Positions 80 to 57,143 of a DNA stretch of 64,000 bases are shown in pieces. Position 1 is the first letter of the stretch. Each line of letters opens with the position of its first letter. The notes under the pieces were generated by a model. The model saw nothing but the letters and a program-made list of their open reading frames with translations. It made no database searches and had not been told where the DNA came from. A program made the translations under genes and the position numbers. The stretch spans positions 30,070,001 to 30,134,000 of the forward strand of contig NC_043020.1 of the NCBI RefSeq assembly GCF_006345805.1, read 5' to 3'. This stretch comes from Octopus sinensis. Lineage: Eukaryota.

Positions 80-1373
80 AATAATAATTCTGTCTACAAA
101 AGGCACAAAGCCCGAAAAAAAATGTTGGGGTGGGTTAAGTCGATTACATCGACCTCAGTACTTGACTGGTACTCAATTTACCAAACCTGAAAGGATGAAA
201 GGCAAAATCGACCTTGGCGGAATTTGCACTCAGAACTCAGACGGACGAAATGCCGCTAAGGATTTTGCCCGGCGTGCTAACGGTTCTGTCAGCAGGTAAA
301 TCGGTTACATCGACCCCAGTTCTTAACTGGTACTTATTTTATTGACATCGAAAGGAGAAAAGGCAAAGTCGGCCTCCGCGGAATTTGAACTCAGAACACA
401 AAGCCAGGTGAAATGCCGTTAAGCGCTTTGTCCGTTGCACCAACGATTCTCTCAGCTCGCCGCTTTCATTAGTTTCAAATGTTACCAAAAAGCTAAAAAT
501 TTCAGGGATGGAGGTAAATCGATTACATCTACCCTAGTACGCAACTGGACTCCGGAAGGATGAAAAACAAAGTCGACCTCAGCGGCATTTGAACTCAGAA
601 CGTAAAAACGTGTTACAAAACCCAATCTGTTGTTTTGTCCCATTCTTTGTGTAGCCCCCTGTGGGTAATAAAGAAATTGGTATTTCGTCTGTCTTTACGT
701 TCTGAGTTCAAATTCCGCCGAGGTCGGCTTTGCTTTTCATCCTTCGGGGCCGATAAATTAAGTACCAGTTGCATACTGGAGTCGTTGTAATCGCCGAACA
801 CCCTCCCACCCAAATTTAAGTCTTGTGCCTAAAATATCATTCAGCGAAATTAATAACGGGCGATTCTACATGAAAAAAGCCGTTGAGGCCCAGAATCCAC
901 CAAACTGCAACGAGGACTCGACCTTGCGGAGGAAACCCTAGCATCAATTGGATTATATTTCTTTATTGCCCACAAGGGGCTAAGCATAGAGGGGATATAC
1001 AAGGACAGACAAAGGGATTAAGTCAATTACATCAACCCTAGTGCGAAACTGGTACTTTATTTAATCGACCCCGAAAGGATGAAAGGCAAAGTCGACCTCG
1101 GCGGAATTTGAACTCAGAACGTAGCGGCAGACGAAATACCTATTTCTTTACTACCCGCAAAGGACTACACACAGAGGGGACAAACAAGGACAGACAAAGG
1201 GATTAAGTCGATTACATCGACCCCAGTGCATAACTGGTACTTATTTAATCGACCCCGAAAGGATGAAAGGCAAAGTCGACCTCGGCGGAATTTGAACTCA
1301 GAACGTAGTGGCAGACGAAATACCGCTAAGCATTTCGCCCGGCGCGCTAACGATTCTGCCAGCTCGCCGCCTT
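80..1373. mobile_element. Cluster of about 6 stacked copies or fragments of a tRNA-derived SINE (here called SINE-A), mostly on the minus strand
   Basis: Repeated body GGCGAGCTGGCAGAATCGTTAGC..GCCGGGCGAAATGC..GTTCTGAGTTCAAATTCCGCCGAGGTCGACTTTGCCTTTCATCCTTTCGGGGTCGAT..AAGTACCAG with A-box (TGGCAGAATCG) and B-box (GTTCAAATTC). Copies at about 115-293(-), 294-465(-), 500-610(-), 615-830(+), 950-1140(-) and 1141-1373(-). Confidence 0.9.
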
Positions 1374-1394
1374 ATATTAATCCCACTTGGATTA

Positions 1395-1770
1395 ATTAGC
1401 AAAAAGGCATTTCATCGTATTCTGCATTCTTGGATATTTCGGTGGCACAGCACCGTCTGGAGAGCCTCCGCATAAATAAATCAAACTTCATTATTAACCG
1501 AGTGCATAAAGAGTTCAATGCTATGAAGGAAGTCATCGATATCTTTCTAAAGCAAAGAGAGATGAGGAATAAAACCAACTCCGTGTTTATGAGAAGATGA
1601 ATCTTGGAAGGAGATTCGTTGCTTCTCTCGACTCTTCTGCTTAATTCTGACCCCGTTCACAAATCTGTGGATTAAAAGCCATTAGTGGCTATAAGCATCT
1701 CGGATTATTTATAAGCCATCTCCTATCTATGGACAATTGTAAAATATTTACAAGAGACAACAGCCTGTCG
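1395..1770 (+). pseudogene. Degraded R4/Dong-clade non-LTR RT fragment
   Basis: Manual translation gives KKAFHRILHSWI (like KKAFDSVPHSWI), an EGDS motif (like QGDS) and ISHLLSMDNCKIF (like ISHLLYMDDLKLF). It matches the better-preserved copy at 58110-59700. Confidence 0.65.
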
Positions 1771-1789
1771 GAAAATCGACAGAAAATTG

Positions 1790-2562
1790 TTAGCGCGGCT
1801 GTGTGGTAAAAAAATTTGTTTTCCAACCACATAGTTCCGGGTTCAATTCCTCTGTGAGTCACCTTGGGCAAGTGTGACCTATTTTAGTCTCGGGTCGACC
1901 AAAGTCAAGCGAGTAAATTTGGTAGACGAAACCTGAAAGACGCTCGTCGTTTATGTATGTATGTATGTATGTATGTATGTATGCATGTATGTATGTATGC
2001 ATGTATGTATGTGTGTACGTATGTATGTATGTATGTATGTATGTATGTATGTATGTATGTATGTATGTGTGTATGTATGTATGTGTGTATGTATATATGT
2101 ATGTATGTATGCATGTATGCATGTATGTATGTATGTGTGTAGGTATGTATGTATGTATGTATGTGTGTATGTATGTATGTATTATGTATGTATGTATGTA
2201 TTATGTATGTGTGTATGTATGTATGTATGTACGTACGTACGTACGTATGTATGTATGTATGTATGTATGTATGTATGTATGTGTGTATGTATGTATGTAT
2301 TATGTATGTGTGTATGTATGTATGTATTATGTATGTATGTATGTCTTTGTGCTTGTATTTATCTCTACCACCTCTCGACAACTGGTATTGGTTTGTTTAC
2401 GTTCACGTAACTAAGTGGTTCGTCATAAGACTAATATAATATAAATACCAGGCTTTAAAAGATTAGTACAGGGAACGATTCATTCGATTAAAAACCCTTC
2501 AAGGCGCTGCTCCAGTATGGCCGCAATCCAATGAGCGAAAAAGAGCGAAAGGTAAAAGGTAA
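1790..2562 (+). mobile_element. SINE-B (tRNA head, CORE-like central domain) with about 390 bp of internal (TATG)n
   Basis: Head GGCTGTGTGGT..GGGTTCAATTCC, core CACCTTGGGCAAGTG, (TATG)n at 1953-2343, tail GCTGCTCCAGTATGGCCGCA..GAAAGGTAAAAG. Confidence 0.85.
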
Positions 2563-2589
2563 ATCTAACTTAGGAATGCAAGTAATTAT

Positions 2590-2975
2590 GGGACAAGAAA
2601 ACTGTGCCAAAGACTGTGAGAGGCAGAGGTGTATAAAGTGGGACGATTAAATCAGATGCTGATAGTGAAATCGGAGAATTAGACTCAACTCCACATTTGT
2701 GGATGACAAAAGTGATAAGATACAACAGACGGAAATTAAAAAGAAACTTATGAACGAAGAACTGTTGAAGGACCAGACGAATACCGAAAGCCTGAGCTCA
2801 ACGCTGGAAATCAGATAAGAGATATAAATAGACTGATTAACCGTTCCAGTTGTAAACCGTTGCTCTAAAGAAATTAGACATCTTTCTGAAAGCACAGCCA
2901 CAGAAGTGATGTAGATGGAATATAACTGCTCTGCACAGAAGAGGAGGGGCCCTGATACAAAACGAGGAAAGTGGG
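2590..2975 (+). pseudogene. R4/Dong post-RT fragment, probably the continuation of 1395-1770 split by the SINE-B insertion
   Basis: Translates to PELNAGNQIRDIN and HRSDVDGI, resembling SELNARNKVLAIN and HPKSDVDRLY of R4/Dong ORFs. Confidence 0.55.
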
Positions 2976-3044
2976 ACAATGTCTAAAGAGGTACGGAGGT
3001 AAAAATGTGTTTCTCTCTGCATAATAAATTTTATGATTTTCTTT

Positions 3045-3246
3045 TTACTTGTTTCAGCCATTTGGATTGCGGCCACTCTGGGGCACCCCCTTGAAGAATT
3101 TTTAGTGGAACTAATCAAGTGCAGTACTTTTTTTTAACGCCTAGTACTAGTTCTATCGTGTCTTTTGCCGAACTGCTAAGTTGCGGGTTGTCAGTAGGTG
3201 AAGGGGACGCACACATAAACACACACACACGCACACACACACACAC

Positions 3247-3282
<36 letters not shown>

Positions 3283-3500
3283 CACACACACGCACACACA
3301 CAAACACACACACGCACACACACACACACACTTGTATGTATATGTGTTTATACGACGGGCTTCTTTTTGTTTCTGTCTACCGAATCAACTGACAAGGTTT
3401 TGCTCAGCCTAAGGCTATGCTTGAGGACACTTGCCCAAGGTACCATGCAGTGGAATTGAATCAGGGGCCATGTAGTCGGGAAATAAACTTTTGACCCCAC
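3045..3500 (-). mobile_element. SINE-B with internal (CA)n
   Basis: Reverse-complement tail CTTGTTTCAGCCATTTG, (CA)n at 3225-3330, core ACACTTGCCCAAGGTACC. Confidence 0.85.
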
Positions 3501-4199
3501 ATCAATGCAAGGAAACCACGAAGTAGAAACTTTAAACGAACAACTTCAAAGAAAGACATGATAAACGATTTTAAAAAATACTAAAAAAAAGAAAAAAAAC
3601 AACGAAAGATTAAATCAAAACGAGGAAATAGAATGAAGAACTTGCAATAATGGTAAACTGGGTTAGAACTCACCCCGACCCCGACCCAGTTCTACATTCT
3701 CAACAGACAATGTTGCACGTCAGGAATACGGAGATGCACTTGGTGGTGTTAAAGGAAATCGCATGAAACTGGTTGGGGAAAAATAACAACTAGTGAGTGA
3801 ATTTGGTCGAGAGACTGTGCGGAAGCCTGCTTTATGTATGTATATATGTACGTATGTATGTATGTTCTCTTCTGTTTTTAATTATTTAAATTCTTACTCT
3901 GGGGAAGGAACTGGTTTCTAACAAAGATACAAAGCTCCATCTTTGGAATGTAGATAACAAAAACTGTTTACATTTTAAACCTGAGAAAAGTCTTGCATAT
4001 TTTCACTGTTCCGCTTAGAAATTGTATTAATTATGTGAAAGTTAGATTAATGACTTATTTTTCTGAAAACTTTAGCTTATCCAGATTATTATCAAATATG
4101 ATTGTGACTAGAGAAATTTAATAAAAGTATTATAAGAAATGGTAGATTAATTTAAAGTAATAACAAGGAATTAGATACAAACTATACGAAAACCAAAGA

Positions 4200-4470
4200 A
4201 TTTGTTCAGAACCACAATTTAAAAGTTATGAGTAGATGAGAATGAAGAGGCATGAAGGAGAAAGAAATGAAGGAGAAATTTAGGAAGAAATACCCGAGAA
4301 GAATGAGACTAATATTAAAGTTGAAGTCAATGCTAGAAATAAGATGATAAATATTAATGCCTAAGCTGTCTCTCGTGTAAGCTACAGCTTTAACGCAAGA
4401 AACTGGAAGTGAAATCAATAAAGGAGCTTAGAGAGAAAAATCCAGGCAACTACTAACAGCGTTCCGAAGC
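4200..4470 (+). pseudogene. R4/Dong fragment
   Basis: Reads EMKEKFRKKYPRRMRLILK followed by VNARNKMININA*AVSRVSYSF, homologous to MKEKIRKKCYRKVRAVLKSELNARNKVLAINSLAVTAVIYSF at 58640-58963. Confidence 0.65.
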
Positions 4471-5239
4471 TGTTAGAAGTTTCCCGGTTAAAAGTACAAT
4501 ATTCTTCTCCACATTCGGAAACTGAAATAGTTGCATACAAGAAGCCTCCACGTTGACATTGGCCAAGAAATAGCAGTCGAATTCCCCATGTATAATGTCG
4601 TCTTGGAAAGGGAATGGATCCACAGGGTGATGTAGCCTTGCGTATGTCTAAAACAATGGGAGTATCACGGTTAGAGTCATTTTAATTATACGTGTGTTCA
4701 ATTAGAGAAACTAATTAATGTAATATGAGAGGGTAAATAAAACCCGGTTTACCTGGCAACAAAATACAAACAAAAATAAAAATGGTAACATTAAAATCTT
4801 TAATATCTGTGTAAAAAGTAAGCAACGTTTTGAACCATGAAGAATTTGTACCGGTTTTTGCAGATTTTTGCAATTTTTTAAACATTTTTTTGCAATTGTC
4901 TGATAATACAGACATAGACTTGCTCAAATGCATCAATAAATTAACATTAATATTTTTTTTTCACAGTAGTTACGATCATCTGTTTTTCTGGATATTGAAT
5001 AACGTTTAGAGACCTGGAGGTGAGTTTAAATAATTGTTGCCTGTTGCAGGATTCCTTGTTGTTGTTTTATTGTTGTAACCGTTGAGTTGTTAATTAACGG
5101 CTTGTAATATTGTTGTTGTAATATTGTTGTTGTTATCCTTCCCCCACGGGGGAAGGATAACAACAACAATATTTGTTTACCTCCTTGTGGAGGATTGATT
5201 GAAAAGTATGTATGTGTGTGAATATTTGTGCCACATATC

Positions 5240-5585
5240 TGTGTGCTGGGTCGAGGCTTAGTAGTTGGGTTTTTGGGCTCACAGTCGCAGGGTCGCGAGT
5301 TCAGTTCCCGGCGACGCGTTGTGTCCTTGAGCAAGACTCTTTATTTCGCGTTACTCCGTTCCACTCAGCTGGCAGGGGTGAGTGATACCTGTACTTCAGC
5401 GGGTCAGCTTTGTCACACTCTGTGACACGCTGGGTCTCCCTGAGATCTACGTTAAGGGTACATGTGTCTGTGGAGTGCTCACCTTCTTGCACGTTAATTT
5501 ACAATTAATTTCAGCGGATTGCATATTAATTTCCTCTCGATCCGATCAAGTGGAACTCTCATTGTCATAACAGATGGCGTATCAG
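5240..5585 (+). mobile_element. SINE-C (tRNA-derived), diverged copy
   Basis: tRNA-like head GGGTCGCGAGTTCAGTTCCCGG. The tail CTACGTTAAGGGTACATGTGTCTGTGGAGTGCTC is shared with 18154-18538. Confidence 0.75.
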
Positions 5586-5739
5586 CTAGTTCTATGCATT
5601 CTTTCCCTTTTCTCTTCATCCTTCACTTACTTCTCCATTCTAACATAAATTCCTGGTCCTGAATTTGCGATTATATTCTTGCTCTGATCAAAAAAGTATC
5701 GGTACCGATGCTATAAAACGAAAATTACAACACATCTCA

Positions 5740-6050
5740 ATTCAGCGTTGAACCTCTCTTGAAGTGGTCCCCTTCTTGAAGTGACACACTTTATCCAACC
5801 TCGTTTCCATTGCTGGAAGCATTCCTATAATTCCTTTTTGGGGGACAGCGACCAGCTGCCTTGTCGCATTTTCTTGGATTTCCTCGGTGTCTTGAAATCT
5901 TTTTTCCTTTCAAGCCTTCATTTGCGTATCACAGCCACACCTGTAATGATTGTTTTCAAAACATTTACGTCTTCCTTGACTCAATCAAGGAAATTCTGGA
6001 CGGTTGAAACCTGATCTTCATCTTGTGAGGTCCATACTCAACCACTCAGT
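5740..6050 (-). pseudogene. Internally deleted mariner transposase remnant
   Basis: Minus strand reads VKEDVNVLKTIITG, then LKGKRFQDTEEIQENATRQLVAVP and CFQQWKRGWIKCV, typical mariner catalytic and C-terminal motifs. Confidence 0.7.
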
Positions 6051-6095
6051 GCAGACGTTCCGCAATACATACAAAAAGCAATGTTAGAAATTATT

Positions 6096-6520
6096 AAGTA
6101 GGTGAACTGGCAGAAACGTTAGCGCCCCGGGCGAAATGCGTAGCCGTATTTCGTCTGTCGTTACGTTGTGAGTTCAAATTCCACCGAGGTCAACTTTGCC
6201 TTTCATCCTTTCGGGCTCGATTAAATAAGTACCAGTTACGCACTGGGGTCGATATAATCGACTTAATCCGTTTGTCTGTCCTTGTTTGTCCTCTCTGTGT
6301 TTAGCCCCCTGTGGGCAATAAAGAAATAAGAAACGTTAGGATGCCGGGCGAAATGCTTAGCGATATTTCGTCTGTCTTTACTTTCTGAGCTCAAATTCTG
6401 CCGAGGTCGACTTTGCCTTTCATCCTTTCGAGGTCGATAAATTAAGTACCAGTTGCGTACGGAGGTCGATCTAATCGACTGCTCCCCTCCCCCTCGGGCC
6501 TTGTGCCTAGGGTAGAAAAG
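6096..6520 (+). mobile_element. SINE-A dimer (first body with tail type i, second with tail type ii) flanked by a 16-bp direct repeat
   Basis: AATGTTAGAAATTATT at 6080-6095 and 6521-6536. One head is followed by two bodies joined at AATAAAGAAATA|AGAAACGTTAG (6328/6329). Confidence 0.85.
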
Positions 6521-7597
6521 AATGTTAGAAATTATTGTGAGAAATAAGGAAAAGAAATCTAGAAAAGAAAAGAAAAGTAATTATTATTAGAATTCATAGG
6601 AGAGAAGGAAAGGGGGAAACGAAGCGAAAGAAAGAAAATAAAAAAGACAAGAATAAAGCGAACAGAGAATGCAGTCAATCGGACGCGTCCACACCTGTTG
6701 GGGGAAACATGGTAAAGGTGGTTTCGCCCAGTTTCTACTTCTCATAATGACTATAATTCCCAAAATCTTTCATCTCTTGTATAAATGATATCATAATCAT
6801 ATTAATTTCTGAGGATGAAACTTTCTTCTGCAGTACAAAAGCTTACTCTATATCCATTTTTATAATCTTTTTTCCTGTGGATTATTTGAAGCTTTTCTTT
6901 TGCTGTCCAAATACAGTCGGTTAAATTTGTTGTTTTTGCCATTCTGTCTAAAAGAGGAAGTTTGGTTGTACAACCTTCGGAATACAGAATTTTCTCTTTT
7001 TGTAACCTTTGCTCAATAAATGACAAGTTCTGCGTTGCAGGACATTTAGCAAACTGGCGTTGGTATTTCTAAATGAGCAAATGACTTCAGTTTTTGTGCC
7101 ATGTGCGTGAGATTATGTTCCTCATGCTTGTGGCGCAGCTGTAACGTCGTTTAAAGACTATCTTAATATATTTGTGATCGGTGGGAATTGCTTGTCCATT
7201 AAGGTTATATAACGGTTTGAGTTATTAAACATTAAGTGAAAAGATGTGTATGAACCATAGAATTTGTAGCAGATTTTCTTTGTTGCATCACATGAAGACA
7301 ATATTATCCTTGAATCCGCCACCTAGTAATGTCTAAAATACATACCTAGTGGGTTCATTTGATAAGTATTATAGATGTCTAAGTTCTCCAGCGAAAGTGC
7401 AGTATTTCAATGATGCTTAGTTTTAAAGATATTAAAAGAATTAACGGTGGGGAGTGGGGTCGCCAAAATAATTTTGTTAAAAAATGTGTCATGTAGGCAT
7501 GAAATCATGGTTAAGACATTTCCTTTCAGATACACGGCAACTGTCCGGAAACCTTTCATGTTTTTATGCATATATGATGTATGCATGTATAAATGTC

Positions 7598-7660
<63 letters not shown>

Positions 7661-8049
7661 AGTATGTGTGTGTATGTATGTATGTATATAATTTTGCAAG
7701 GAAAAGTTTGACAGCGGCTTCAGAGTTTCAGGTTTAGTAAGCCGAACCTTCGAAATCACTATTGAATGATCCTTCAATGTAATATTGAATTTTTCTAAAT
7801 ATGACTTCGTATTTAAAAAAAAAACCCTGTCTTTAAGTGTTCTCATGGAAACAAACAATTACAACTTCTGGTATGACGACAATGGAAGCTTTTGATTGGC
7901 TACAATTACATAGTTTTAAGAATTTCTACTTTTGGATTATTAATTTTAAGAGAAAATGAATGGGTTTTCGCCATTAGTATGCAAATCAACAGCAATGATT
8001 TAAAAAAAAATTCTGACATTTGGAAGCAATTTAAAAGGGTCCGTGAGGT

Positions 8050-8260
8050 TTCTTCGGACTCTACTTTGCATTTCATTCTTTCAAGGTCGATAGAATAGGT
8101 TCCAGTTGCGTACTGGGGTCGATGTAATCAACAAGCCCCCTCACCCAAAATGTCAGATCTAGATACATGCCTAGAGTCGAAAGAATTATTACTAAGGTGG
8201 CTGAATCGTTAGAGCGTCGGACAAAATGTCTTGTGATACTTGTTCCGCGACCCACTTCCC
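8050..8260 (+). mobile_element. Diverged SINE-A fragments
   Basis: ACTTTGCATTTCATTCTTTCAAGGTCGATAG..CCAGTTGCGTACTGGGGTCGATGTAATC with tail type ii, followed by a second head. Confidence 0.7.
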
Positions 8261-8461
8261 CTTTTGTCCCTAGTCAAGTTCTAGGTTCGACTGTATCGAC
8301 CAATCCTAACCTTTCCCTTGAGCCTAATCAGAAACCGTCCTTACTCGGTCGGTGGCCACTCTTCCGCACTCTTTGTATCTTAAAAACTACTTCAGTCTGT
8401 ACCAAGTAACTCGATACAAAGAGTTTTTCTTTAGCAGAAACACTTCTTGTTGAACCAAAAT

Positions 8462-8534
8462 AATTCTTTTGTTTGTATCTAAATAACCCTTTTCTTATTG
8501 CTAGAAAAGGGTTATTTAGATATGGCAAAGAATT
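8462..8534. repeat. Hairpin with a perfect 20-bp stem
   Basis: TATCTAAATAACCCTTTTCT (8476-8495) is the exact reverse complement of 8503-8522, with a 7-nt loop and imperfect outer pairing AATTCTTT/AAAGAATT. Confidence 0.9.
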
Positions 8535-8807
8535 TCTATTGTCCAAATCCACACACACACACACACACACCAATGTGTTTATATACCACATTAAAAAGTA
8601 ACTATATTGAATATTTATATGTTTTAATAACGTTTTGACCGAGCTCCATATGACTTCAAGCTTGAAGAGCTCGTAGGACGAACCCATCTCATCAGATATT
8701 TGGAGAGGATTTGTGGTGAGTGAGGTTCCTTCTTACGAGCAGACGAAGTCATGCGGAGTTGAGTCAGACTGTTATTAAATAACATACATATATGTGTATA
8801 TATATAT

Positions 8808-8923
8808 ATCGAAATCTGCGATGAGGGATCAGTTTCTGACTGAAGAATGAAGGCTTTGAATGACCCGTTTGTTTTTTTGTTCGTCCCTTCGTGTATTTCA
8901 CGTTATTTATTTATGTAAAGGTT

Positions 8924-8930
<7 letters not shown>
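8808..8930 (+). mobile_element. Short dispersed repeat between (TA)n runs, homologous to 56040-56360(-); possibly a PLE terminus
   Basis: Shared motif TGACTGAAGA.T.AAGGCTT.GAATGACCCGT. The PLE assignment is inferred only from the (TA)n context. Confidence 0.45.
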
Positions 8931-8976
<46 letters not shown>

Positions 8977-8978
8977 AT

Positions 8979-9015
<37 letters not shown>

Positions 9016-9650
9016 ATATATAAATGTATTGAGTGCTACTCTCTTTCGTTTGCGCACTCACTCGAATGTGTGTATGCGTGTTTATATTCATATATATATA
9101 TTGGAACTGGATCTCGAAGCACATAGAAAGCTTTAAATAATAACACATGTATTGTGTGTGTGTGTGCGCGTGCGTGTTTAATAAGACATACAGTTTCTTG
9201 ATAATGTCGATTCTCATTTTTTTTTTTGTCTGTTAACCGAAAACCCGATTCTTCGGTAATGGATCTTCACAATGCATCTTGAAGGAAACCGTCCAAGAGT
9301 TGCCATTATTGATTTCCTTGTCGTTTCCACACAATGCTCACAGATTCTCAACAGACTCTCCATTGTGGTGAGGCCAGGATAGTATCGGGCTTGTTGTTGT
9401 CGTTGTTGTTGTTGTTGTTCAATACTAGGTCGTCCCTGATTGAACGAAGATATAATTACAAACGGCACTCCAGCCGTGATTATCACCACTTCTGTTTTCT
9501 GAACCATCCAGAGCTTCATCATCTCAGGTGTTCTGGGTTGTTTGTTTTTTTTTTTGTTTTTTTGTTGTCTTCTCTTTTGCTTTTTGTTTTATTTTTCTTT
9601 GAAGACCACGTCTGATCTGAAGTTATGCAACAGCAGTAACATCATCTTCA

Positions 9651-9653
<3 letters not shown>

Positions 9654-9695
<42 letters not shown>

Positions 9696-9702
9696 CACCA
9701 CC

Positions 9703-9752
<50 letters not shown>

Positions 9753-9777
9753 CACAGCTGCTGCTGCTGCTACTGCT
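9654..9777. repeat. Compound (CTA)n/(CCA)n/(CTG)n microsatellite
   Basis: Direct inspection. Confidence 0.95.
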
Positions 9778-9959
9778 ATTATGAGGTCGGTGATGAACCA
9801 ACCAGAGAACGTGCTGTATGGAAACAACCAAATATCTTTAAAAAGACTCGACACTTCCATCAATGCTGTTCGGGATATCATGAAATAATTAGGTTCTTTG
9901 AATATATACACTGACAGCTAAAATAAAATCTGTAGGTATTTCTATAATATCTACATCTA

Positions 9960-9994
<35 letters not shown>

Positions 9995-11125
9995 GTCGAA
10001 ACACAATGGGTGGTCTCTGCCATCTGCTTTGAAATGTCAGAGACAATGTCAGAGACAAACATCCTGGAAATCGCGGTTCTAGGAGAGAAAGACTATGTGG
10101 GCAAATCAATCGAATTCCTGCTTCAATTGGATGAAGCAGCAAGAGAGAAGATACCCACCGCTATAGAACTGCCAGGAGGCTACAAACTCTATATAGTGGT
10201 AGAGGGCAGGCGACCACGCTGCTATTTGTGTGGAAGCGAAACACACTTGAAAAAGACGTGCCAACCACTGCACACCAAGAGCAACAACAACAACCACTAC
10301 CACAACCAAAGCACTCCGGAAAAAAAGCTCTACTACCACACCACCATCAACACAGAAGACGACAAGAGAAGCACACCAAGCTAATCCGTCATCAACCAAA
10401 AACCACTCGACACCTGGAAAAATACCAACACTACCATCAACAGCAAAACCCAAAGGAACAGAAAAACAAAGAAAACACACACAACTGATCCCCCATCCCT
10501 TATACCGCACTCAACACACACAAACACTCAACAACCAACAACAACGAAAACAACAACACAACCACTTACACAGACATACATAGAAACCCACAACATACCC
10601 CTACCCCCTTCTGATTCCTCAGAAATTTCGTCGGAAGACGAAACCAGTGAGGAATGGCAAATAGCTACAAAAAGAAGGAAAATAAAGAGCAGAAACACAA
10701 CCAAACCAAATGCAAACACGAACAAAGCAGGGGGAAATACATCTCCCGAAGACATTTCAAAACCCAACGCAAACAACAGCCACACCAACACCACAAAAAC
10801 ATATACAGCAAACATGCTCACAGCCATAGACACCAAAAACACAAATTTGATGGAATACATCCAATCAAAAACAAACATAACAGAAGATGACATAAAAACA
10901 AACAACCACCCATACACAACACCACCAGACCACATCAAAATAATACACATCTCCAAAAGTCTGCACCACACACTCAAAGGCATTTTCCCCAGTGCGGTTG
11001 GTAAATGCAAAAATATCTCACAAAGAAACTGTACTGGGATCTTCTCGAGGACAAACCAACGGAGGAGAAAGCAAAAACTTTCGAGCATAAGTAACCCTCT
11101 GTATTCTAATTCATTAGAACTATGA
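9995..11125 (+). pseudogene. Tx1 ORF1 remnant (gag-like, zinc knuckle), frameshifted
   Basis: EGRRPRCYLCGSETHLKKTC is C-X2-C-X4-H-X4-C. It is followed by a long A/C-rich low-complexity region. The last ORF piece ends at TGA 11123-11125. Confidence 0.8.
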
Positions 11126-14100
11126 TCAAGATTGGTTGTGTAAATGCGCGTGGCTTGGGGTCCCCTTGGAAACAAGGGTACCTCTTAAATGACATAAAGT
11201 CACATAAGTTAGAAATCATAGCCATAAGCGAGACCAGACTCCACAATCCGCGGGCCCTAAAGACCATGTTTGGCGGACAGTTCAACATTTATTTTTCCCC
11301 CTGTCTGCCGAGAATGGGCGGTAGTGGCACCGCGGTACTTCTTCACAAGAGTCTGGATCTCAATGTAAGGACAATATTCGTAGACCGGAGGGTGAGGTAG
11401 ACTGGTCGTCCTGGATGTCGACGGCAGCAATGGGTGCGCTTTTCGGCTCGTATCAGTTTACGCACCGCCCTTAACAGGTCGGGCGGATTTCTTTCAACGT
11501 CTAGAAGTTTTCTTGGGAACGTCTCGTCCTTTACTCTTAGTGGGGGATTGGAATGCTACCTTGGACACGCATGTAGACTACGTGGGTAGAGATAGGAATA
11601 GACGGGGATGCAAATGCCTCAGAGACCTGCTCAGACGCTTTCAACTGTCTGACAGGTTTCGACTAGACCACCCGAATGCGCCAACGTGGACATGGAGCAA
11701 CCGCAGGGTCGTCGAGATCGTATCTAGATAGGATACTGTGTAGGACAGTAGATAGAGATAGCATAGGATGTCCACAATTCCACATAGTCAGCTACACGGA
11801 TCACAAACTTGTGACATGTACGCTAGACTTAGGTAAGACACTTAGGCAGGGTCCCGGATACTGGAAACTAAACGCGTCTTTCCCATCGAGACAAGTTTTC
11901 AGAGACCGGATTAGCACACTAGTAAAGAGGGCTTTGACGGGAGCCATCATCAACAACAAATGGTGGTTTGCCCTCAAGAGAGCAGTAAAAGCAGAAGCGA
12001 TTAGGTACAGCAAAGCACTAGCCATAGATAGAAATAGAGTAGAGGGTGAGCTAGTTAAGAAGCTAGAAGAGGCAATTAGAAGCGGACATCGCATCCGACG
12101 TTTTGGCGGCGAGGTTGGCCCTCGACCAACACTTCAACGCCAAACACGAAGGATGTGCTGTCAGAGCTAGGATGCGTGCTCTAAGGAACGAAGGTGTTGG
12201 AGCCGCGAGAGAGGCCCGGGTGGCAGAGGCGCAACAGGGCAACAAAGCCACCATTCGGTCACTGGTAGATGAACAGGGGCGCGAATTGCTCGAGCCAAGT
12301 AAAATGTGTGAGGCCTTTCAGCAGCATTTTGCCCGACTGTTCGGAACGAGTGGAGGGCAAGAACGTAGGGTGGACTTCAGTGCCTACCTACATAGCCTAC
12401 CACGACTCTCGACAAGAAAGGCAGGGTGCTGCGAAGGTGCCATCACGGCGGCGGAAGTGCGGGAAGCGATGGCAGAATGCTCGAGGGACAAATCACCGGG
12501 TTTGGATGGTCTACCCTACGAGCTTTACAATTGTATGCCAGACTTGTTTGGAGATCTCTTGGCGGCGGTGTACTGCAACTGCAGCAAAACGGGAGCATTC
12601 CGGTTTTGTGAGCCGAGGAGCCGTAACACTGCTGAAGAAAGATCTAAACAAGGGAAATGTAATAGATAACTTTAGGCCCATCACTCTGCTTAATGCAGAC
12701 TTGAAAATTTTGGCCAAGGTGCTAGCCAAGAGGTTGGCGCTTGTCATCGAGAAACTGGTCGACAAGGCGCAAACATGCGCCGTGCCAGGCCGGACCATCC
12801 ATGACAACCTCCATCTGATGCGCTACATCATAGACAGGGTAGTTAACGAACCTGGCATGGGTGGGGCCCTGATCAACTTGGATCAATCAAAAGCCTTTGA
12901 TAGGGTAGACCATCGATACTTGGAGGCAGTCCTGAGAGCGGCTGGTTTCGGTCCCGTCTTCCGCGGCTGGATAGCTGCCTTGTACAGAGGCATCCGTTCG
13001 GTAATTCGCGTAAATGGACATCTATCGAGACCTTTCGACATTGCACGTTCGGTCCGTCAGGGATGCCCCCTCTCGGCGCTTCTATACGTATTGACTCTTG
13101 AGCCACTACTGCGGAAGCTGGCGACTCTAAGGGGCATCCCGCGAGAATTGGGATGCGGGACGAGCGTGTCTGCATACGCGGACGACGTCACCGTCATAGT
13201 GTCTAGCCACGAGCACATCGAGCTGGTCGGCGAGACACTGAAAAACTACGAAGCGGTGACAGGAGCGAAAATCAACCGGGAAAAGTCAGTGGGCTTGCGA
13301 CTAGGCACCTGGAGAAGCAAGCCCATGCCGTCCACCAGCGCCTCCGTCGTGGGACGCTGGACCGACGGCCCGGTTGAGTTGCTCGGGGTCTGGTTTGGTC
13401 CGGACCTCCAAGTGGAGAAGAACTGGAACGAGATAACGAGTAGGGTGGTCACTCTCGCCCGGCAATGGGCCGAGAGGAAACTGTCCCTAAAAGGTCGAGC
13501 GGAGGTGGCGAACACGTACATCGCGTCCGTCATCTACTACCGCCTGACCGTCGTACCTTGTCCCGACCCTACCATCACCAAACTACAACGCATCCTCTTT
13601 CGCTTCTTGTGGAAAGGATGCGTCCCGATGGTCAGGCGATCCATTTGCTGTCAACACCCGTTAAAAGGAGGGCTGGGCATGCCGTGGTTGATGATGCGCA
13701 GACACGCGCTGAGACTGCGACATCTCTGGCTATGTAGACGACGGTGAACAGGTGAGGCACGCTTTCCCGCAGCTCGTCTCCATGACCGAACTGCAGTCGT
13801 GGATCAAAAAGAGGCCGAGGAAGGGCGAATGGCACCGCGAGTGTCGCGTTGCTCTCAAGCAACTCTGCCGTCCTGGGTCGACCTTAAGTGACTTCAACAC
13901 AACCAAAGCATTCTATAGGGGTTTAGTGGAGGGGAGGTACGACGACGAGCTCGGGGCGAACCTGGACGTCGACGAGGAGTACCTGACCCGCCTGTTCGGG
14001 ACGACTTTCGGGCCAGGGCCCATGGACAACTTCCAGAGATCCCTGGCCTGGCAGTGCTACCGAGAAGCGCTACCCGTTCGGGATAAGCTCTACAGACACG

Positions 14101-14543
14101 GCTCGAGAAACACGGGGCCGACCTGCCCGAGATGCGGTCAGAGCGACGAAACCGTTCTGCACGCACTCGTTCAGTGTCCAACAATTTCCGACCTGTGGGC
14201 TTATGTCGAACAACTGCTGTCACGTGTGGGACGAGTCGGTTTATCAGCTGAGTCTATCGTCAATATTGTCACGCCTCCTTCCTTCAAACGGGAAGGAAGA
14301 GCTATTTTCATCATCCTTGTGGCTATGGCGAAAGAATGTATCTGGTGGACGCGTCTGAAAGGATTGGAGACAAACACTTTCCTCTCTGGTCAATCTCTCA
14401 TCAACTTCTTCAAGTACCACTTGAAAAGGAAAGTGAGAGTAGAGAGGCAAGTTTTGTCTAGCGAATGTTTTAAAAAAAGATGGGTGAATGTAGCAAGAAT
14501 GGCACGTATGAATGACGAAGCCACCTTGAGCATAGTCCTATGA
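11122..14543 (+). pseudogene. Tx1 ORF2 (AP endonuclease, reverse transcriptase, zf-RVT), broken by several frameshifts
   Basis: APE: MIKIGCVNARGL, ISETRL, GDWNA, SYLDRI, TDHK. RT: FRPITLLNADLKILAK, NLDQSKAFDRVDH, VRQGCPLS, AYADDVTV. C-terminal CPRCGQSDETVLHALVQCP. Confidence 0.95.
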
Positions 14544-14930
14544 ACCCAGAAATCGAAAACAGAGAGTTGCTTATTTGCAAAAAAAAAAAAAAAAAAAAAG
14601 AAATATAAAATGTGACTTCATTGACCGAGGTTACCGTGGTCTTTTCCGCAGGCTTTTCTTTCCACGGGTAAACCTCCTGTCCTCCCCTTTACACTTCATA
14701 TTGACATTTCTGTGATAACGATCCCTATTGATCATTTTTTTTCCTCTCCCCCCCCCTTTTTTTTTTTTTTAACCCCCTTATTTTTGTCCTCTTTCTCTCC
14801 TTTTACGATCCCTTTTGATCGAACTCCCCCTTCCTTTTTTTTTTTTTTTTTTTAATACCTTCAAAAGAAAAGCTCTACCTTGTAATTTGTTCTATCTGTG
14901 TGCAGCCCTGTGTGGCTAATAAAGAAACAT

Positions 14931-14995
14931 ATCTATCTATCTATCTATCTATCTGTCTATCTACCTGTCTATCTATCTATCTATCTATCTACCTG

Positions 14996-15051
<56 letters not shown>

Positions 15052-15055
15052 CCTG

Positions 15056-15121
<66 letters not shown>

Positions 15122-15160
15122 CGTCTATCTGTCTATCTATCTATCTATCTACCTACCTAC

Positions 15161-15221
<61 letters not shown>

Positions 15222-15222
15222 G

Positions 15223-15268
<46 letters not shown>
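14931..15268. repeat. (ATCT)n microsatellite, 3' flank of the Tx1 element
   Basis: Direct inspection. Confidence 0.97.
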
Positions 15269-15269
<1 letters not shown>

Positions 15270-25784: not shown

Positions 25785-26105
25785 TTGTTCCAGTCATTTG
25801 ACTGCGGCCATGCAGGAGCACTGCATTTAGTCGAGCAAGTCGACCCCAGGACTTATTTTTTTGTAAGCCTAGTACTTATTCTACCAGTCTCTTTTGCCGA
25901 ACTGCTAAGTGACGGGGATGTGAACACACCAGTATCGGTTGTCAAGCGATGTTGTCACACGCATACACACACACACACACGATGAGCTTCTTTCAGTTTC
26001 CGTCTACTAAATCCACTCACAAGGCTTTGGTTGGCCCAAGGCTATAATAGAAGACACTTGCCCAATGTACCATGTAGTGGGACTGAACCCGGAACCAGTC
26101 AAGAG
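25785..26105 (-). mobile_element. SINE-B with internal (CA)n
   Basis: Tail GTTCCAGTCATTTGACTGCGGCCATGC, core GACACTTGCCCAA, head GGGACTGAACCCGG (read on the plus strand). Confidence 0.9.
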
Positions 26106-26289
26106 AATAGCCATACAGGATGTAAAGCTCGTATTTCTGGCTGTGATTTTTGGGGTAACCACAACTGGTCACCAGGGTGGCGCACCTCAGCTCTATCGCT
26201 TTGTTGTCGTCACAAGTAAAGAAGTTTCATTTAAATAGTTAAAAACAAAGTTTTTTCAAGCAACACGGTCATTAAATGACGTAAGACAT

Positions 26290-29094: not shown

Positions 29095-29515
29095 ACTCTT
29101 TTACTCTTTTACTTGTTTCAGTCATTTGACTGCAGCCATGCTGGAGCACCGCATTTAGTCGAGCAAATCGACCCCGGGACTTATTCTTTGTAAGCCCAGT
29201 ACTTATTCTATCGGTCTCTTTTGCCGAACCGCTAAGTTACAGGGACGTAAACAGACCAGCATCGGTTGTCAAGCAATGCTAGGGGGACAAACACAGACAC
29301 ACAAACACACACACACACATACATATACATATATACATACATATATACGACAGGCTTCTTTATCAATTTCCATCTACCAAATCTACTCACAAGGCTTTGG
29401 TCGGCCCGAGGCTATAGCAGAAGACACTTGCCCAAGATGCCACGCAGTGGGACTGAACCCGGAACCGTGTGGCTGGTTAGCAAGCTACTTACCACACAGC
29501 CACTCCTGCGCGTAT
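29095..29515 (-). mobile_element. SINE-B, well-preserved full-length copy
   Basis: Head (minus) GCAGGAGTGGCTGTGTGGTAAG..GGGTTCAGTCCC, core GGCATCTTGGGCAAGTG, internal (CA)/(TA) repeat, tail GACTGAAACAAGTAAAAGAG. Confidence 0.92.
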
Positions 29516-30124
29516 ATAAAAGTTTGTTTATAAAAAACAACACTATGAAATAATAGTTCTTAAATCTGAGGGAAAGAAACTGCTAGGTGTATTTTAGTGT
29601 AGTGATAGAACACTTGTCACGAATACATAGAGATGTGGGTCCGAATCCCATGCGTACAGCAAACTCCCCTTTTTTCCGTCGAGGGCTTATATGCCCCAAT
29701 ATCAGACTATTTACCTTAGTCAATGCATGGTGACCGCTTATAAGCTTTAAGCTTATAAAATATTAAAATACATTATATTATATTATAATATAATAAAATA
29801 CACCCATTTTATTATATTATAAACATACATGTGTACATATGTGTGCTTATTAATTAATTTTTCTCTCCTTAAAGCTGCATACTTTGCATTTTTGTAAAGC
29901 GAATTTCATGTGCGTCACTCTACTGAACCCGTGTATTGTCTGTGGCAGTGTTTCTAGTTATTTATCATCTGAAAAGTATAGCTGCAGACTGTACCTATGC
30001 AAAAGACGGCTGATTGTTTACTAAGACCCAGGTGGACTTAGTACAAACATTAGTTAGATGTGCCAATGCCAGGCAGAAAATAAGTGAGTGGAATGAGTGG
30101 AGGCGAGTATTCTTGTATATTCCT

Positions 30125-37019: not shown

Positions 37020-37230
37020 TTAGTTTCAAGATTTGGCACACGGCTAGGGACTTCAGGGGAGAGGTAAACGATTGCACCAACCTCAGTGTTTAACTGGTAC
37101 TTGCTTTATCGACCCCAAAAGGATGACAGACAAAGTCGACATTGGCTGAATCTGAACTCAGAATGTAAAGACGTGTGAAATGTCGCTAATCATTTTGCCC
37201 AGCGCTCTAACGATTCTGCCAGCTCAGCAA
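37020..37230 (-). mobile_element. SINE-A (tail type ii)
   Basis: Plus strand ACTGGTACTTGCTTTATCGACCCCAAAAGGATGACAGACAAAGTCGAC..GAACTCAGAATG..CTAACGATTCTGCCAGCTC. Confidence 0.85.
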
Positions 37231-40239: not shown

Positions 40240-41520
40240 AAAAATGAATCCAGGTAAGAAAAAGTTACAGGTAAAAAGGTTACAGAAAAAAAAAAAGGGG
40301 GACAACGTTAGCACTGTTTCTGCGTCTTTCTTTAATAAAAAGGTTAACTGTCGAATTCTCCCTTTTTAAAGGTTAATATGCCAATCAGTGTCTGTAAAGT
40401 AATATGCAGAACTGATGATAAATTAATGAGTTATGAACTCTACGCAACCAACGGCCTACTCTTCCTGTACCACGTTTGCTAAAAGATCTAGGTGAACTTC
40501 CTACTGAGTATTCTATGACAGTTAGCCTAATCCCGAGGAGTTTTTACTCTATGATAAGGGACCAAAGGCAAACAACCGCGCTCTAGTGTTTGGTACCAGT
40601 GATGACCTCAGACTCCTTTCTGGTGCTGATACTCCATATATGGATGGCAACTTTGCTATGGCACCAAATATTTTCAAACAGAACTGTGTCATCCGTGTCC
40701 CTTTCAGTGATACAGCTGTTACTTCAGTGTACGTTCTTCTTCCAAACAAGACTCGTGTCGCCTTCGAAGAACTCTTTCAGGCCATAGTTGATGAGTGTGA
40801 AGACCTAAGCTATTCTATTAATGTGCAAACCGTGGTGACTGACTTTGAAGATGGTGCACTGAGAGCTGTTCTTGCAAGGTTTGGCTGCGACGTAGAGAGC
40901 AAAGGTTGTTTCTATTATCTTACGCAGTCCACTTGGCGTAAAAGCCAGGAACTGAGTTTGGGAACATTGTATAATACCAATGCTCAGTTTCGTCTGTTTT
41001 GTGGAATGATTGATGCTCTAGCTTTTCTGCCCTTAGAAGACGTTAATGAAGGTATGAGATACTTCAGAACTGACATTCCACAAGATCCACCTGAAGCCGA
41101 GGAACTGCTCCATTGTACTTCGATTGTACTTATGTTGGTGGCTCCTTTTGACTGATTCAACAGCCAGTTGCCATGTCCAGTGACGTCCTGATCCCTCTGA
41201 AAATGCGTCACATTCCACCTATGTTTGCCCCTCACCTATGGAATGTGCATGGCATTCGTACGAAGGGTGGAATAATAAATTCTTCAACCTCGTTGGTCAC
41301 TACCATCCTTTATTCTGACGTGTCAATGAATGGTTTCAACGTGAAGAAGCGACAGTGATCACCATTATCCGGCAGGATGCTGTGTTGGCAACCCAGCTCA
41401 CCACCTCAAAGAAGAATGCCTTCTCAACTTGTGTACTGTTCAACGGGACGACCACCAGACTGTGGCAGAGTTTCTTCGTGGCTTCGGTTTGAATATTTGT
41501 CTTAATCACCAGCTTTAAAA
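40240..41520 (+). pseudogene. Mutator/MULE transposase fragment
   Basis: YMDGNFAMAP, VYVLLPNKT, VVTDFE, GCFYYLTQS (like GCFFHLTQS), ALAFLP, and a WNVH motif. AAAAAGTTACAG subterminal-like repeats lie at 40258-40285. Confidence 0.88.
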
Positions 41521-47439: not shown

Positions 47440-48224
47440 ATTGCATTGGTAGAATCGTTAGAGCATCAGAAAATGCTCTTTACGTTCTAAGTTCAAATCT
47501 CGCCGAGGTCAACTTTCCTTTTCATCCTCTCAAAATAAAGTTCCAATGGAGTACTGAGGTCAATGGTATCGATTGACCCCCATCCCCAGCCCTCAAAACT
47601 GTTGGCTTTGTTCCTAAATGAGAAGCGATGAAGAGGGCGATGGTTTGGAAAAAATCGTTAGAGTTTCGGAAAAAAGGCCAAGCGGTAATCGTTTGAGTCC
47701 TTTGTGATCTAAGTTCATTACCTGCCGAGGTCAAGTTTACCTTTCATTCTTTCAGGTCGATAAAATAAAGTACCAGTTAAGAACTGGGGTCGATGAGATT
47801 CACTTGCCCCTCCCCTCAAAACCACTAGACTTGTGTCCAAATTAGAAAGCATTATTTTTGTGCTATGTATTGTGTGTGTATATTTGTATTATTCTTATCT
47901 ATATTATGTATGCGTGTATACGTCAACATTACTATGTAATCTTCATTATGTATGGGTTTATATTATTATGCAAGCTGGCATGCCGGACAAAATGCTTTGC
48001 GGCATTTCTTCCGTCTTCGTGTTCTGAGTTCAAATTTCGCCAAGGTCGACTTTGCCATTCATCTTTCCGGACTCGATGTACCAGTTATGTATTAGGGTCG
48101 ATGTCATCCACTAGCCTTCCCCTTCCCCAAAATTTCATGCCTTGTAGCGAGAGTAGAAACAATTAATATTTACATAAGTCATTAAGAAGTATGTATACAC
48201 TTAGTTTTACATGTCATCTATCTA

Positions 48225-53112: not shown

Positions 53113-53439
53113 ATATATATATATTGTCACACATGAAATGTCGTATTGTAAGGTAATAATAAAATGTTTCAGAAGTGTTAGAGAACTTATTTATTTAATC
53201 AAAGTATGATCCATATGCCCAAGGTGCCACGCAGTGGGACTGAATCCGGAACCATGTGGTTGGGAAGTAAGCTTCTTACCACACTGCCAATCCTGTAAAT
53301 TTTAACAGTGGCTCTCTTTTAGTAAAAGTTACAGATGTCCTACTAATTAATAAGCAGCTTTGTTCCTTATTGTATGTAAATGTTTTGTCAAAGCCAAAAA
53401 TATTTAGTATCCATCTATCTATCTATCTATCTATCTATC

Positions 53440-53486
<47 letters not shown>

Positions 53487-53488
<2 letters not shown>

Positions 53489-53646
53489 CTTTTTTTTCCT
53501 TTTCTTTTTTTCTTTTTTCTTTCCCTTTTACGATCCCCTTTGGTCGAAAACCTACGCCACTTTTTTTTTCTCGCCCCCAAAAAGAAAAGCTCTACTTTGT
53601 AATCTGTCCCGTCTGTGTGCAGCCCTGTGTGGCTAATAAAGAAACA

Positions 53647-53647
<1 letters not shown>
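53487..53647 (+). mobile_element. 5'-truncated 3' end of the Tx1 family, inserted in (ATCT)n
   Basis: The last 36 nt are identical to 14895-14930, with 5 substitutions in the preceding 17 nt. (ATCT)n lies at 53412-53486 and 53648-53716. Confidence 0.92.
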
Positions 53648-53716
<69 letters not shown>

Positions 53717-56859: not shown

Positions 56860-57130
56860 CAGGTATTTATTCTATGTTTTGCCGAACTGCTAAGTTACGG
56901 GGACGTAAACAAACCAACACCGGTTCTCAAACGATGGTAGGGAACAAACAAACAAATACTCACACACACATGTATATATACAGGGCTGGCTTCTTTCAGC
57001 TTCAGTCTACCAAATCCAGCCACAAGGCTGAGGCTATAATAGGAGGTACCCAAGATGCTTTGCAGTGGGACTGAATCCGGAACGAAGTGTTTGGGAAGCA
57101 AACTTCTAACCACACAGCCACGTCTGCGTA
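56860..57130 (-). mobile_element. SINE-B immediately downstream of the U6 copy
   Basis: Minus-strand head CGCAGACGTGGCTGTGTGGTTAG..GGATTCAGTCCCACTGC; plus-strand TTTTGCCGAACTGCTAAGTTACGGGGACG. Confidence 0.88.
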
Positions 57131-57143
57131 AAAACCCCAGAAC

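Follow-up and report, generated by a model that had tools for sequence, protein, structure and literature searches.

A 3′-terminal module common to octopod SINEs and an L1-superfamily, Tx1-like LINE lineage

The LINE at the locus

We analyzed a 64,000-nucleotide stretch of the Octopus sinensis genome (assembly GCF_006345805.1, contig NC_043020.1, positions 30,070,001 to 30,134,000 of the forward strand; hereafter, the window), which holds a long interspersed element (LINE) and copies of a short interspersed element, SINE-A, one of whose tails (tail i) resembles the 3′ end of the LINE. An earlier note, made from the letters of the window, had proposed that the SINE is a stringent partner of a Tx1/L1-clade element, that is, one that depends on recognition of a common 3′ tail. 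Coordinates are those of the window unless a contig is named.

The LINE is a defective, near full-length L1/Tx1-type element (9995 to 14929, forward strand) that lies within a (TATC)n array, identified with Tandem Repeats Finder (TRF) at 9960 to 9994 upstream and 14930 to 15269 downstream. At the 5′ junction ...ctatctat is followed by gtcgaaacac, and at the 3′ junction ...aataaagaaaca is followed by tatctatc. The first open reading frame (ORF1) survives as a remnant with a CCHC zinc knuckle (CYLCGSETHLKKTC) on the forward strand at 10010 to 10384, for which no Pfam match was found. The remains of ORF2, all on the same strand, comprise a frameshift-broken apurinic-type endonuclease region (11122 to 11731, in pieces at 11122 to 11400 and 11513 to 11731) with a weak Exo_endo_phos match (E 0.0037, below the Pfam cut-off), a reverse transcriptase (RT) piece with cephalopod homologues (12269 to 13747; RVT_1, E 2.3e-31), and a C-terminal piece with the zf-RVT zinc-binding domain (13752 to 14543; PF13966, E 2.7e-8). 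Among solved structures, the RT piece is closest to human LINE-1 ORF2p (E 5e-32), with R2 at 1e-14. The relatives P0067, P0080, and P0111, as well as the genes of contigs L002 and L018, carry the PF03372 endonuclease. The L1-type ORF2 set (apurinic-type endonuclease, RT, and C-terminal zinc-binding domain) is thus present, the endonuclease being weak in the decayed window copy and clear in its relatives, and the domain content of these predicted proteins shows that the window LINE belongs to the L1 superfamily.

A second copy of the LINE, 5′ truncated and reduced to the 3′ untranslated region (UTR), is found on the forward strand at 53488 to 53646, again inside (TATC)n (53408 to 53487 and 53647 to 53724). 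Both copies have the identical 3′ junction, GAAACA followed by TATC, and (TATC)n on both sides in the same phase. Arrays of the (TATC)n type make up less than 2% of the window and hold both LINE copies (2/2, a sample of two), which argues for target-specific insertion. The identical ends, in the same phase of the array, also indicate that the tail is the LINE's own and does not belong to an adjoining SINE. We infer the Tx1 assignment from the L1-type domains and the target specificity, together with published octopus annotations. In octopus genome repeat annotations L1-Tx1 is the only L1-type LINE group (PMC13282606, PMC8967140), and target-specific insertion is a hallmark of Tx1-type elements (PMC4494074). 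The ORF2 homology searches, run against a set without reference Tx1 proteins, returned no match bearing the Tx1 name.

The terminal module of the LINE occupies 14878 to 14929 on the forward strand. It consists of CCTTGT..TTTGT, TCTGTGT, a hairpin with the arms AGCC (14904 to 14907) and GGCT (14914 to 14917) around the loop CTGTGT, and finally AATAAAGAAA (14918 to 14927) and CA. In the truncated copy, the hairpin lies at 53621 to 53634 and AATAAAGAAA at 53635 to 53644.

SINE-A copies with tail i

The SINE-A copy at 6100 to 6327 (forward strand) shows the full arrangement: a head, a body resembling CORE, and, beginning near 6268, a tail like that of the LINE, with a hairpin formed by GCCC (6304 to 6307) and GGGC (6313 to 6316) around CCTGT and with AATAAAGAAAT at 6317 to 6327. 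A 5′-truncated forward-strand copy lies between (TACA)n and (AT)n at 61094 to 61300 and abuts the (AT)n. Two reverse-strand copies form a head-to-tail dimer, the upstream unit at 1141 to 1368 and the downstream unit, which starts from body position ~47, at 956 to 1139. A lone tail-i fragment with the hairpin GCCC/GGGT is found at 634 to 677 (forward strand), with another SINE-A body immediately 3′ of it. The window therefore contains five tail-i SINE ends; the copies are about 10% diverged, and their consensus tail ends in ...TTTGTCTGTCCTTGTTTGTCCCCTCTGTGTTTAGCCCCTTGTGGGCAATAAAGAAAT(A). All five are located outside (TATC)n, which bears out the earlier observation that the SINE copies are not in (ATCT)n, a name for the same repeat, and indicates that target choice is not common to the SINE and the window LINE.

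SINE-A also contains a B-box-like GAGTTCAAATTCC and a CORE-like segment, TTTCATCCTTTCGGGGTCGATAAATTAAGTACCAG, both recognized by eye, the latter with no CORE reference compared. In the window, ARAGORN found no tRNA and Rfam matched only a U6 small nuclear RNA (snRNA), so the SINE head is not assignable to a tRNA.

Three of the five tail-i ends (1139/1141, 677/680, and 6327/6335) have another SINE-A immediately 3′, in head-to-tail orientation. The downstream units begin twice at body position ~47 (GGTATTTCGTCTG) and once at ~13, and the dimer at 1368 to 956 on the reverse strand has a candidate target-site duplication, AATATAA. Such junctions may come from template switching or from a preferred insertion site within the SINE.

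The match between SINE and LINE tails

The LINE tail at 14891 to 14927 and the SINE tail at 6290 to 6326 are identical at 29 of 37 positions without gaps, exactly as the earlier note had counted. The hairpin positions given there were also right, with both hairpins flush with AATAAAGAAA, and the further upstream similarity it described (CCTTG..TTTGT) is contained in the local alignment of the SINE-tail consensus with the LINE tails. As a background control for T/C-rich composition, we compared all ~128,000 37-mers of the window, on both strands, with the SINE tail. The mean match was 9.3 (standard deviation, 2.7) and the best unrelated 37-mer reached 23/37; the only segments above this value were the SINE tails themselves and the two LINE 3′ ends (14891 and 53608, each with 29/37). 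With the 10-mer AATAAAGAAA removed, the remaining upstream 27 nt still match at 19/27, against a background maximum of 18.

The alignments point in the same direction. Aligned locally with the tails of the LINE, the SINE-tail consensus scored 40 and 45 over about 50 nt. Dinucleotide shuffles (n = 2,000), the kind of control by which the tail similarity had been proposed to be judged, scored 14 ± 2.4, so that the similarity is significant (z = 11 to 13), and none of the 2,000 reached the observed score. The truncated LINE copy (53488 to 53646) agrees with the SINE consensus at 34 of 40 positions. The tail match between SINE and LINE is real and is confirmed by these counts.

At the 3′ ends proper, the Octopus SINE ends in ...GAAAT(A), the Octopus LINE in ...GAAACA and then (TATC)n, and the Argonauta SINEs and LINE described below all end in ...GAAATCTAT. 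No A-tail is seen at SINE or LINE ends in either Octopus or Argonauta.

The module in related LINEs

To obtain the 3′ ends of related LINEs, we retrieved the DNA around the ORF2 relatives. The closest relatives of the ORF2 protein are from cephalopods (Argonauta hians, with 69% identity, and Acanthosepion) and from further contigs with 77 to 81%. At least five further 3′ ends of LINEs in the lineage keep the terminal module, namely TCTGTGT, a stem of 4 bp, the loop CTTGT, and AATAAAGAAAT. The module-bearing relatives have 69 to 77% identity to the window ORF2 over the RT piece (P0001, P0002) and 54 to 59% over the C-terminal region (P0126, P0124), and the remainder of the 3′ UTR differs among them. 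In Argonauta hians contig L001 two adjacent copies end in ...TTCTGTGTCGGCCCTTGTGGCTAATAAAGAAATCTAT (end b) and ...CTGTGTCAGCCAGGTGGCTAAGAAAGAAAT (end a). The Argonauta LINE on L008 (59% identity) ends in ...GTCCCCTCTATGTTTTTGCCCTTGTGGCTAATAAAAGAAAT and the metagenome contig L003 (77%) in ...TTTCCGGGCCCTTGTGGCCAATAAAAGAAATC, each followed by (ATT)n, and the Logan contigs L009 to L012 (54%) end in ...CCCGTCTTTGTTTAACCCTTGTGGTTTGAATAAA. That the module survives across LINEs with widely diverged proteins and 3′ UTRs is as expected of a functional 3′ end.

Not every relative contributes to this comparison. The end of L007 is divergent (…CTCTTGTGGCCAATCAACACAC), with the stem broken, and the contigs L004, L005, L006 (which stops ~25 nt short of the tail), and L013 to L016 stop before the LINE 3′ end and give no tail. 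Scans of metagenome contigs with an ORF2 C-terminal profile and the tail pattern CCCTTGTGGNNAATAAAN{0,1}GAAAT found no match in a collection that apparently contains no cephalopod DNA.

The sister LINE families end in AATAAAAGAAAT and then (ATT)n (2017 to 2105 of L003; 5191 to 5206 of L008), a target or own 3′ repeat unlike the (TATC)n of the window family. We considered whether the (TATC)n after the window LINE and the (ATT)n that follows L003 and L008 could be 3′ repeats belonging to the elements and not targets; as the window arrays are also found 5′ of the LINE, insertion into arrays is favored, the two readings not being exclusive. In L001, a 5′-truncated copy of a LINE 3′ UTR (8400 to 8663) lies ~110 bp beyond a full 3′ end of the same LINE (~8290), the whole region spanning 8014 to 8663; a tandem insertion of this kind is typical of target-specific LINEs. 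In L002, a European Nucleotide Archive (ENA) contig, two full LINE units of a second cephalopod group stand in tandem at 348 to 12180, with a period of 7,547 bp.

The Argonauta hians SINE/LINE pair

The strongest result comes from Argonauta hians. At least six SINE copies were found in its loci; they fall into two body types, and one type is homologous to the window SINE-A in both body and tail. The SINE tails read TTCTGTGT(T)CGGCCCTTGTGGCTAATAGAGAAATCTAT and match the LINE end, TTCTGTGTCGGCCCTTGTGGCTAATAAAGAAATCTAT, at 36/39 and 46/53 positions (z = 20 to 23) over as much as ~70 nt, with an overall tail identity of ~92 to 95%, and SINEs and LINE alike end in ATCTAT. The partner LINE is the closest relative of the window element recovered from that genome (P0001, 69% over the RT piece). 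On these alignments the Argonauta pair is a textbook SINE/LINE pair, and it makes a stringent partner for this LINE lineage hard to avoid.

The predicted terminal hairpin

We compared the stems with their loops (CTTGT) aligned. The stem is GGCC/GGCU in the Argonauta LINE and SINEs, GGCC/GGCC in L003, AACC/GGUU in L009, GCCC/GGGC in Octopus SINE tail i, and AGCC/GGCU both in Argonauta end a and in the Octopus LINE, where it is shifted by one base and has a 6-nt loop. The second cephalopod LINE group (L002, Acanthosepion L017, and L018) has GGC/GCC, and a further Octopus SINE tail, tail ii, has AGGC/GCCU. In the resulting 12-sequence alignment, 87% of the cells are paired and three of the four pairs are changed on both sides. 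The covariation score is 0.455, compared with 0.133 for shuffled alignments (0/500 reach 0.455) and at most 0.098 when the partners are slid. A Watson-Crick-perfect 4-bp stem flush with AATAAA appears in 0.2 to 0.5% of shuffles per tail, a figure that rises to 6 to 14% if G-U pairs are allowed.

The hairpin is also the only consensus structure that RNAalifold returns for the nine group-A tails, and it appears in the minimum free energy (MFE) folds of L003 and of the Octopus and Argonauta LINEs; L008 folds only into a 3-bp version. The predicted fold of the Octopus and Argonauta LINEs has a possible extension, the pairing of UCU.GUG with AUA.AGA of AAUAAAGA, bases that are nearly invariant.

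Interpretation and proposed mechanism

Taken together, we consider it probable that tail i is a LINE-derived 3′ module that comes from an octopod L1-superfamily, Tx1-like lineage including the window element, that its recognition is of the stringent type, and that a sister family serves as the working partner for the SINE of Octopus. The stringent partnership with an L1/Tx1-type lineage that had been put forward for this SINE is supported by the module in at least five other LINE ends, by the Argonauta tails, and by the compensatory stem changes. The module is ~50 nt long in Octopus and ~70 nt in Argonauta, and it comprises TCTGTGT, a 4-bp G+C-rich stem, a CUUGU-type loop, and then AAUAAAGAAAU at the extreme 3′ end, with no poly(A).

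In the mechanism that we propose, the LINE ORF2 protein, with its endonuclease and RT, would recognize the terminal module on its own RNA, and this recognition would start target-primed reverse transcription. The SINE RNA, presumably an RNA polymerase III transcript, as we assume from its degenerate tRNA-like head, bears the same module and could borrow the LINE protein in trans. By this mechanism the RT would read the module, and the determinant would be the hairpin and not the conserved sequence CCnTTGTGG.

Several observations weigh against this interpretation. The first ones concern the hairpin. The covariation rests on only about a dozen independent tails; the RNAalifold consensus energy is a modest −2.5 kcal/mol, with a slightly unfavorable covariation term; and the MFE fold of the SINE-i consensus takes an alternative pairing. 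The helix has just 4 bp, and folding of single tails is no better than that of shuffles (z from −0.2 to −1.9), so that we do not use thermodynamics as support. The 4-bp stem of the window LINE is in a register one base off the others. The two inner C-G pairs and the loop are invariant within group A, a pattern that sequence-specific recognition would explain equally well, and part of the covariation, pair 14-22, is a single split between the two LINE groups, between which the homology of the motif is itself inferred. The remaining points concern the partner: the Octopus SINE tail is only 78 to 85% identical to the tail of the window LINE; the insertion-site signature is not common to SINE and LINE, with (TATC)n holding 0/5 tail-i ends and 2/2 LINE ends; and tail i matches L008 about as well as it matches the window LINE, which leaves no sampled LINE as a clear partner. 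The tail comparison, moreover, covered none of the octopus RTE, CR1, and Dong-R4 LINE clades. As for a better fit of tail i to a non-Tx1 LINE, the window has no other LINE, and its remaining long ORFs gave only one MULE remnant.

We conclude that the hairpin is consistent with the compared sequences and likely, not proven. The short stem had been described as tentative from the outset; it has since gained compensatory changes, with a covariation score that 0/500 shuffles reach, and its folding energy is not significant.

The partner of tail i and alternative readings

No sampled LINE exceeds 85% identity to the tail-i consensus, which scores 40 to 45 with the window LINE and 47 with Argonauta L008. 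Tail i lacks the ...CATATCTATC continuation, and its stem is unlike that of the window LINE on both arms. Together with the position of the copies outside (TATC)n, the equal scores, the different stem, and the absent CATATCTATC make it most likely that the partner is a sister family, either with a different AT-rich target or extinct. The working partner of Octopus tail i is therefore probably a sister family of the (TATC)n element, and the sister-family partner that the earlier note had allowed for fits the identity of 78 to 85%, the GCCC/GGGC stem, and the absence from (TATC)n.

The alternative that survives best is that the (TATC)n family of the window itself mobilized the tail-i SINE, the differences being later drift. 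The window LINE is the only one in the window with this tail, its truncated copy matches the SINE consensus at 34/40, the SINE copies are ~10% diverged and therefore old enough for their tails to have drifted, and in Argonauta the LINE nearest to the window element (P0001) has a near-identical SINE tail. However, the SINE ends in ...GAAAT(A) without CATATCTATC, its stem is GCCC/GGGC instead of AGCC/GGCU, (TATC)n holds none of its five ends and both LINE ends, and a LINE of another species, L008, scores as well (47 versus 40 to 45). On balance we find a partner within the same family unlikely.

We give still less credence to the reverse direction, in which the module is independent or passed to the LINEs from the abundant SINE, through template switching for instance. 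Both template switching and the replacement of tails have been described in LINEs and SINEs (PMC5786205, PMC4824008), SINE copies far outnumber those of the LINE, and the head-to-tail SINE junctions suggest frequent template jumps. Against this, the module is found in LINEs down to 54 to 59% identity in the ORF2 C-terminal region, with a related form in a cuttlefish LINE group; it is contiguous with the LINE 3′ UTR, with no SINE body upstream; and the SINEs are reported as octopus-specific expansions (PMC8967140). A functional tail in common would, in any case, still imply common RT recognition.

It is very improbable that the segment is simply a transcript-end signal, with AATAAA acting in polyadenylation as in mammalian T+ SINEs and mobilization following the relaxed L1 mode, which depends on poly(A). 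The canonical signal is indeed AATAAA, and mammalian L1-superfamily members do use poly(A) (PMC3472496), but SINE and LINE copies lack an A-tail in both Octopus and Argonauta, the conservation reaches 25 to 60 nt upstream of AATAAA and includes the covarying stem, and the Argonauta SINEs have AATAGA. Chance similarity between T/C-rich low-complexity 3′ regions, for which one could cite the abundance of TGTC/TTTG-type sequence in the genome and the presence of strings like TGTGTTTGTCCCC in other SINEs, is refuted by the 29/37 match against a window maximum of 23/37, by the alignment score that 0/2,000 shuffles reach, and by the recurrence of the same tail at exact element 3′ ends in several genomes.

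Tail ii, SINE-B, and other repeats of the window

About nine SINE-A copies carry tail ii (...CCCCAAAATTTCAGGCCTTGTGCCTAGAGTAGAAAGA or ...AGGCCTTGTGCCTAGAGTAGAAAGA, followed by ATTATT). The copy at 59727 to 59935 (forward strand) is inserted in an (ATT)n array and shows AGGC-CTTGT-GCCT followed by TTAGTAGAAAGG; other copies are located at 6329 to 6530, 132 to 292 (reverse strand), 680 to 830, 8060 to 8170, 37069 to 37226 (reverse strand), 47725 to 47830, and 47983 to 48120. The stem-loop AGGC-CTTGT-GCCT resembles the hairpin of tail i, with a different stem. LINEs of the second cephalopod group carry the motif CGGCCTTGTGCCA in their 3′ UTRs (L002 at ~6905, L017 at ~6580, and L018 at ~6392 and ~6808). 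Tail ii, this motif in the second LINE group, and the (ATT)n after the L003 and L008 ends suggest tail replacement among related LINE partners. We regard such swapping within one LINE radiation, which these sequence resemblances suggest, as a lead and not as a result.

A third family, SINE-B (25900 to 26200, 29270 to 29570, and 56950 to 57130, all on the reverse strand), carries GCCTTGTGAGTGGATTTGGTAGA internally and terminates in repeats of the (TATG/TGTA)n type. Its core, GCCTTGTG, recalls the LINE tail motif. Many of the tetranucleotide arrays of the window may be SINE or LINE 3′ repeats.

A degenerate U6 snRNA (57142 to 57246, reverse strand; Rfam RF00026, 76 bits) has a SINE-B copy directly after it, and the unit may be a retropseudogene or a chimera of the kind made by L1-type machinery. 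At 57465 to 58002, beside (CA)n, a 253-bp unit is tandemly duplicated with 99% identity (TRF). The MULE remnant is an ORF at 40586 to 41155 (forward strand) that matches the MULE transposase domain weakly (E 2e-4, not reaching the Pfam cut-off) and is probably what remains of a DNA transposon.

Comparison with known SINE/LINE pairs

SINE/LINE pairs with common tails are long established. One of the closest parallels is found in maize, where the tail of ZmSINE2 and ZmSINE3 and the monocot-1a L1 element LINE1-1_ZM has been read as stringent recognition within the L1 clade (PMC3472496). As in octopods, an L1-clade LINE lineage and its SINEs have a conserved 3′ end in common (of ~45 nt in maize); the hairpin with compensatory stem changes has a likely counterpart in octopods, and the tRNA type of the SINEs a putative one (Ohshima 2012, PMC3472496; PMC3747384). 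The maize pair differs in being from a plant, in its unrelated sequence (loop UCU and 3′ flank CGAG), in its (T)n ends, and in a LINE that is not target specific. A 2013 survey of 58 SINE/LINE pairs contains only two cases from the L1 clade, the maize one and SINEX-3_CR with L1-1_CR of Chlamydomonas, and no mollusc or Tx1 pair (PMC3747384).

In crocodilians, SINEU has been proposed to depend on the target-specific Tx1-clade LINEs Tx1-Mar (Kojima 2015, PMC4494074), which makes it similar in the probable type of LINE. The link there is a common target (Mariner-N4_AMi) and common snRNA-derived 5′ ends, and no LINE with a matching 3′ tail was found, whereas in Octopus the tail is common and the target is not. 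UnaSINE1 and UnaL2 of the eel, and ZfL2 of zebrafish, resemble the octopod pair in the proposed RT recognition of a 3′ stem-loop, the short 3′ repeat, and the absence of poly(A) (Kajikawa and Okada 2002; PMC4176376). They belong to the L2 clade and have longer, experimentally proven stem-loops, while the octopod pair is known from sequence alone.

Kibi, Koshi, and the crocodilian microsatellite-specific Tx1 families are likewise L1/Tx1-type LINEs that sit within microsatellites (Kojima and Fujiwara 2004; PMC4494074). The targets reported for them are (TC)n, (TTC)n, (TTCC)n, and (TTTC)n; the window LINE lies in (TATC)n, and its sister families end in (ATT)n. The passages of PMC4494074 that we consulted mention no partner SINE for these families.

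SINE-A probably belongs to the same superfamily as the Octopus tRNA-derived SINEs OR1, OR2, and OK, of which OR1 and OR2 are classed as CORE-SINEs (Ohshima and Okada 1994, as cited in PMC4758252 and PMC4824008), to judge by eye from its CORE-like segment. The octopus repeat literature that we searched names no partner LINE for octopus SINEs. We likewise found no published description of this octopod SINE/LINE pair in a search of papers that did not extend to Repbase and Dfam, which may already contain such an annotation.

Significance for octopus genomes

SINEs account for ~40% of the transposable element (TE) content of octopus (PMC8967140) and, in O. vulgaris, for 11.6% of the genome (PMC13282606). 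The conserved tail common to both kinds of element indicates L1/Tx1-type LINEs as the probable driver of the SINE expansion in octopus, and the module gives this relationship a concrete RNA element. We can tentatively extend the idea, as a possibility that we hold with much less confidence than the partnership itself. The octopus-specific explosion of SINEs, the largest TE class, could go back to a radiation of L1/Tx1-type LINEs in which an ancestral, stringent mode of template recognition was retained. SINE families (tail i, tail ii, and perhaps SINE-B with its GCCTTGTG) would have exchanged the hairpin module with the CUUGU loop, and every variant would correspond to a LINE family that has a target or 3′ repeat of its own, namely (ATCT)n, (ATT)n, or (TATG)n; the tails would seed many microsatellites of the genome. 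This would be the first stringent SINE/LINE system from the L1 superfamily of animals.

Ohshima raised the question of whether the L1 clade was ancestrally stringent and was relaxed independently in mammals and plants (PMC3472496). A lineage of the L1 superfamily in animals whose tail recurs in a SINE would extend the evidence on this question beyond plants and algae. If true, the relationship would also connect the 3′ termini of SINE and LINE elements with how (TATC)n and (ATT)n microsatellites arose.

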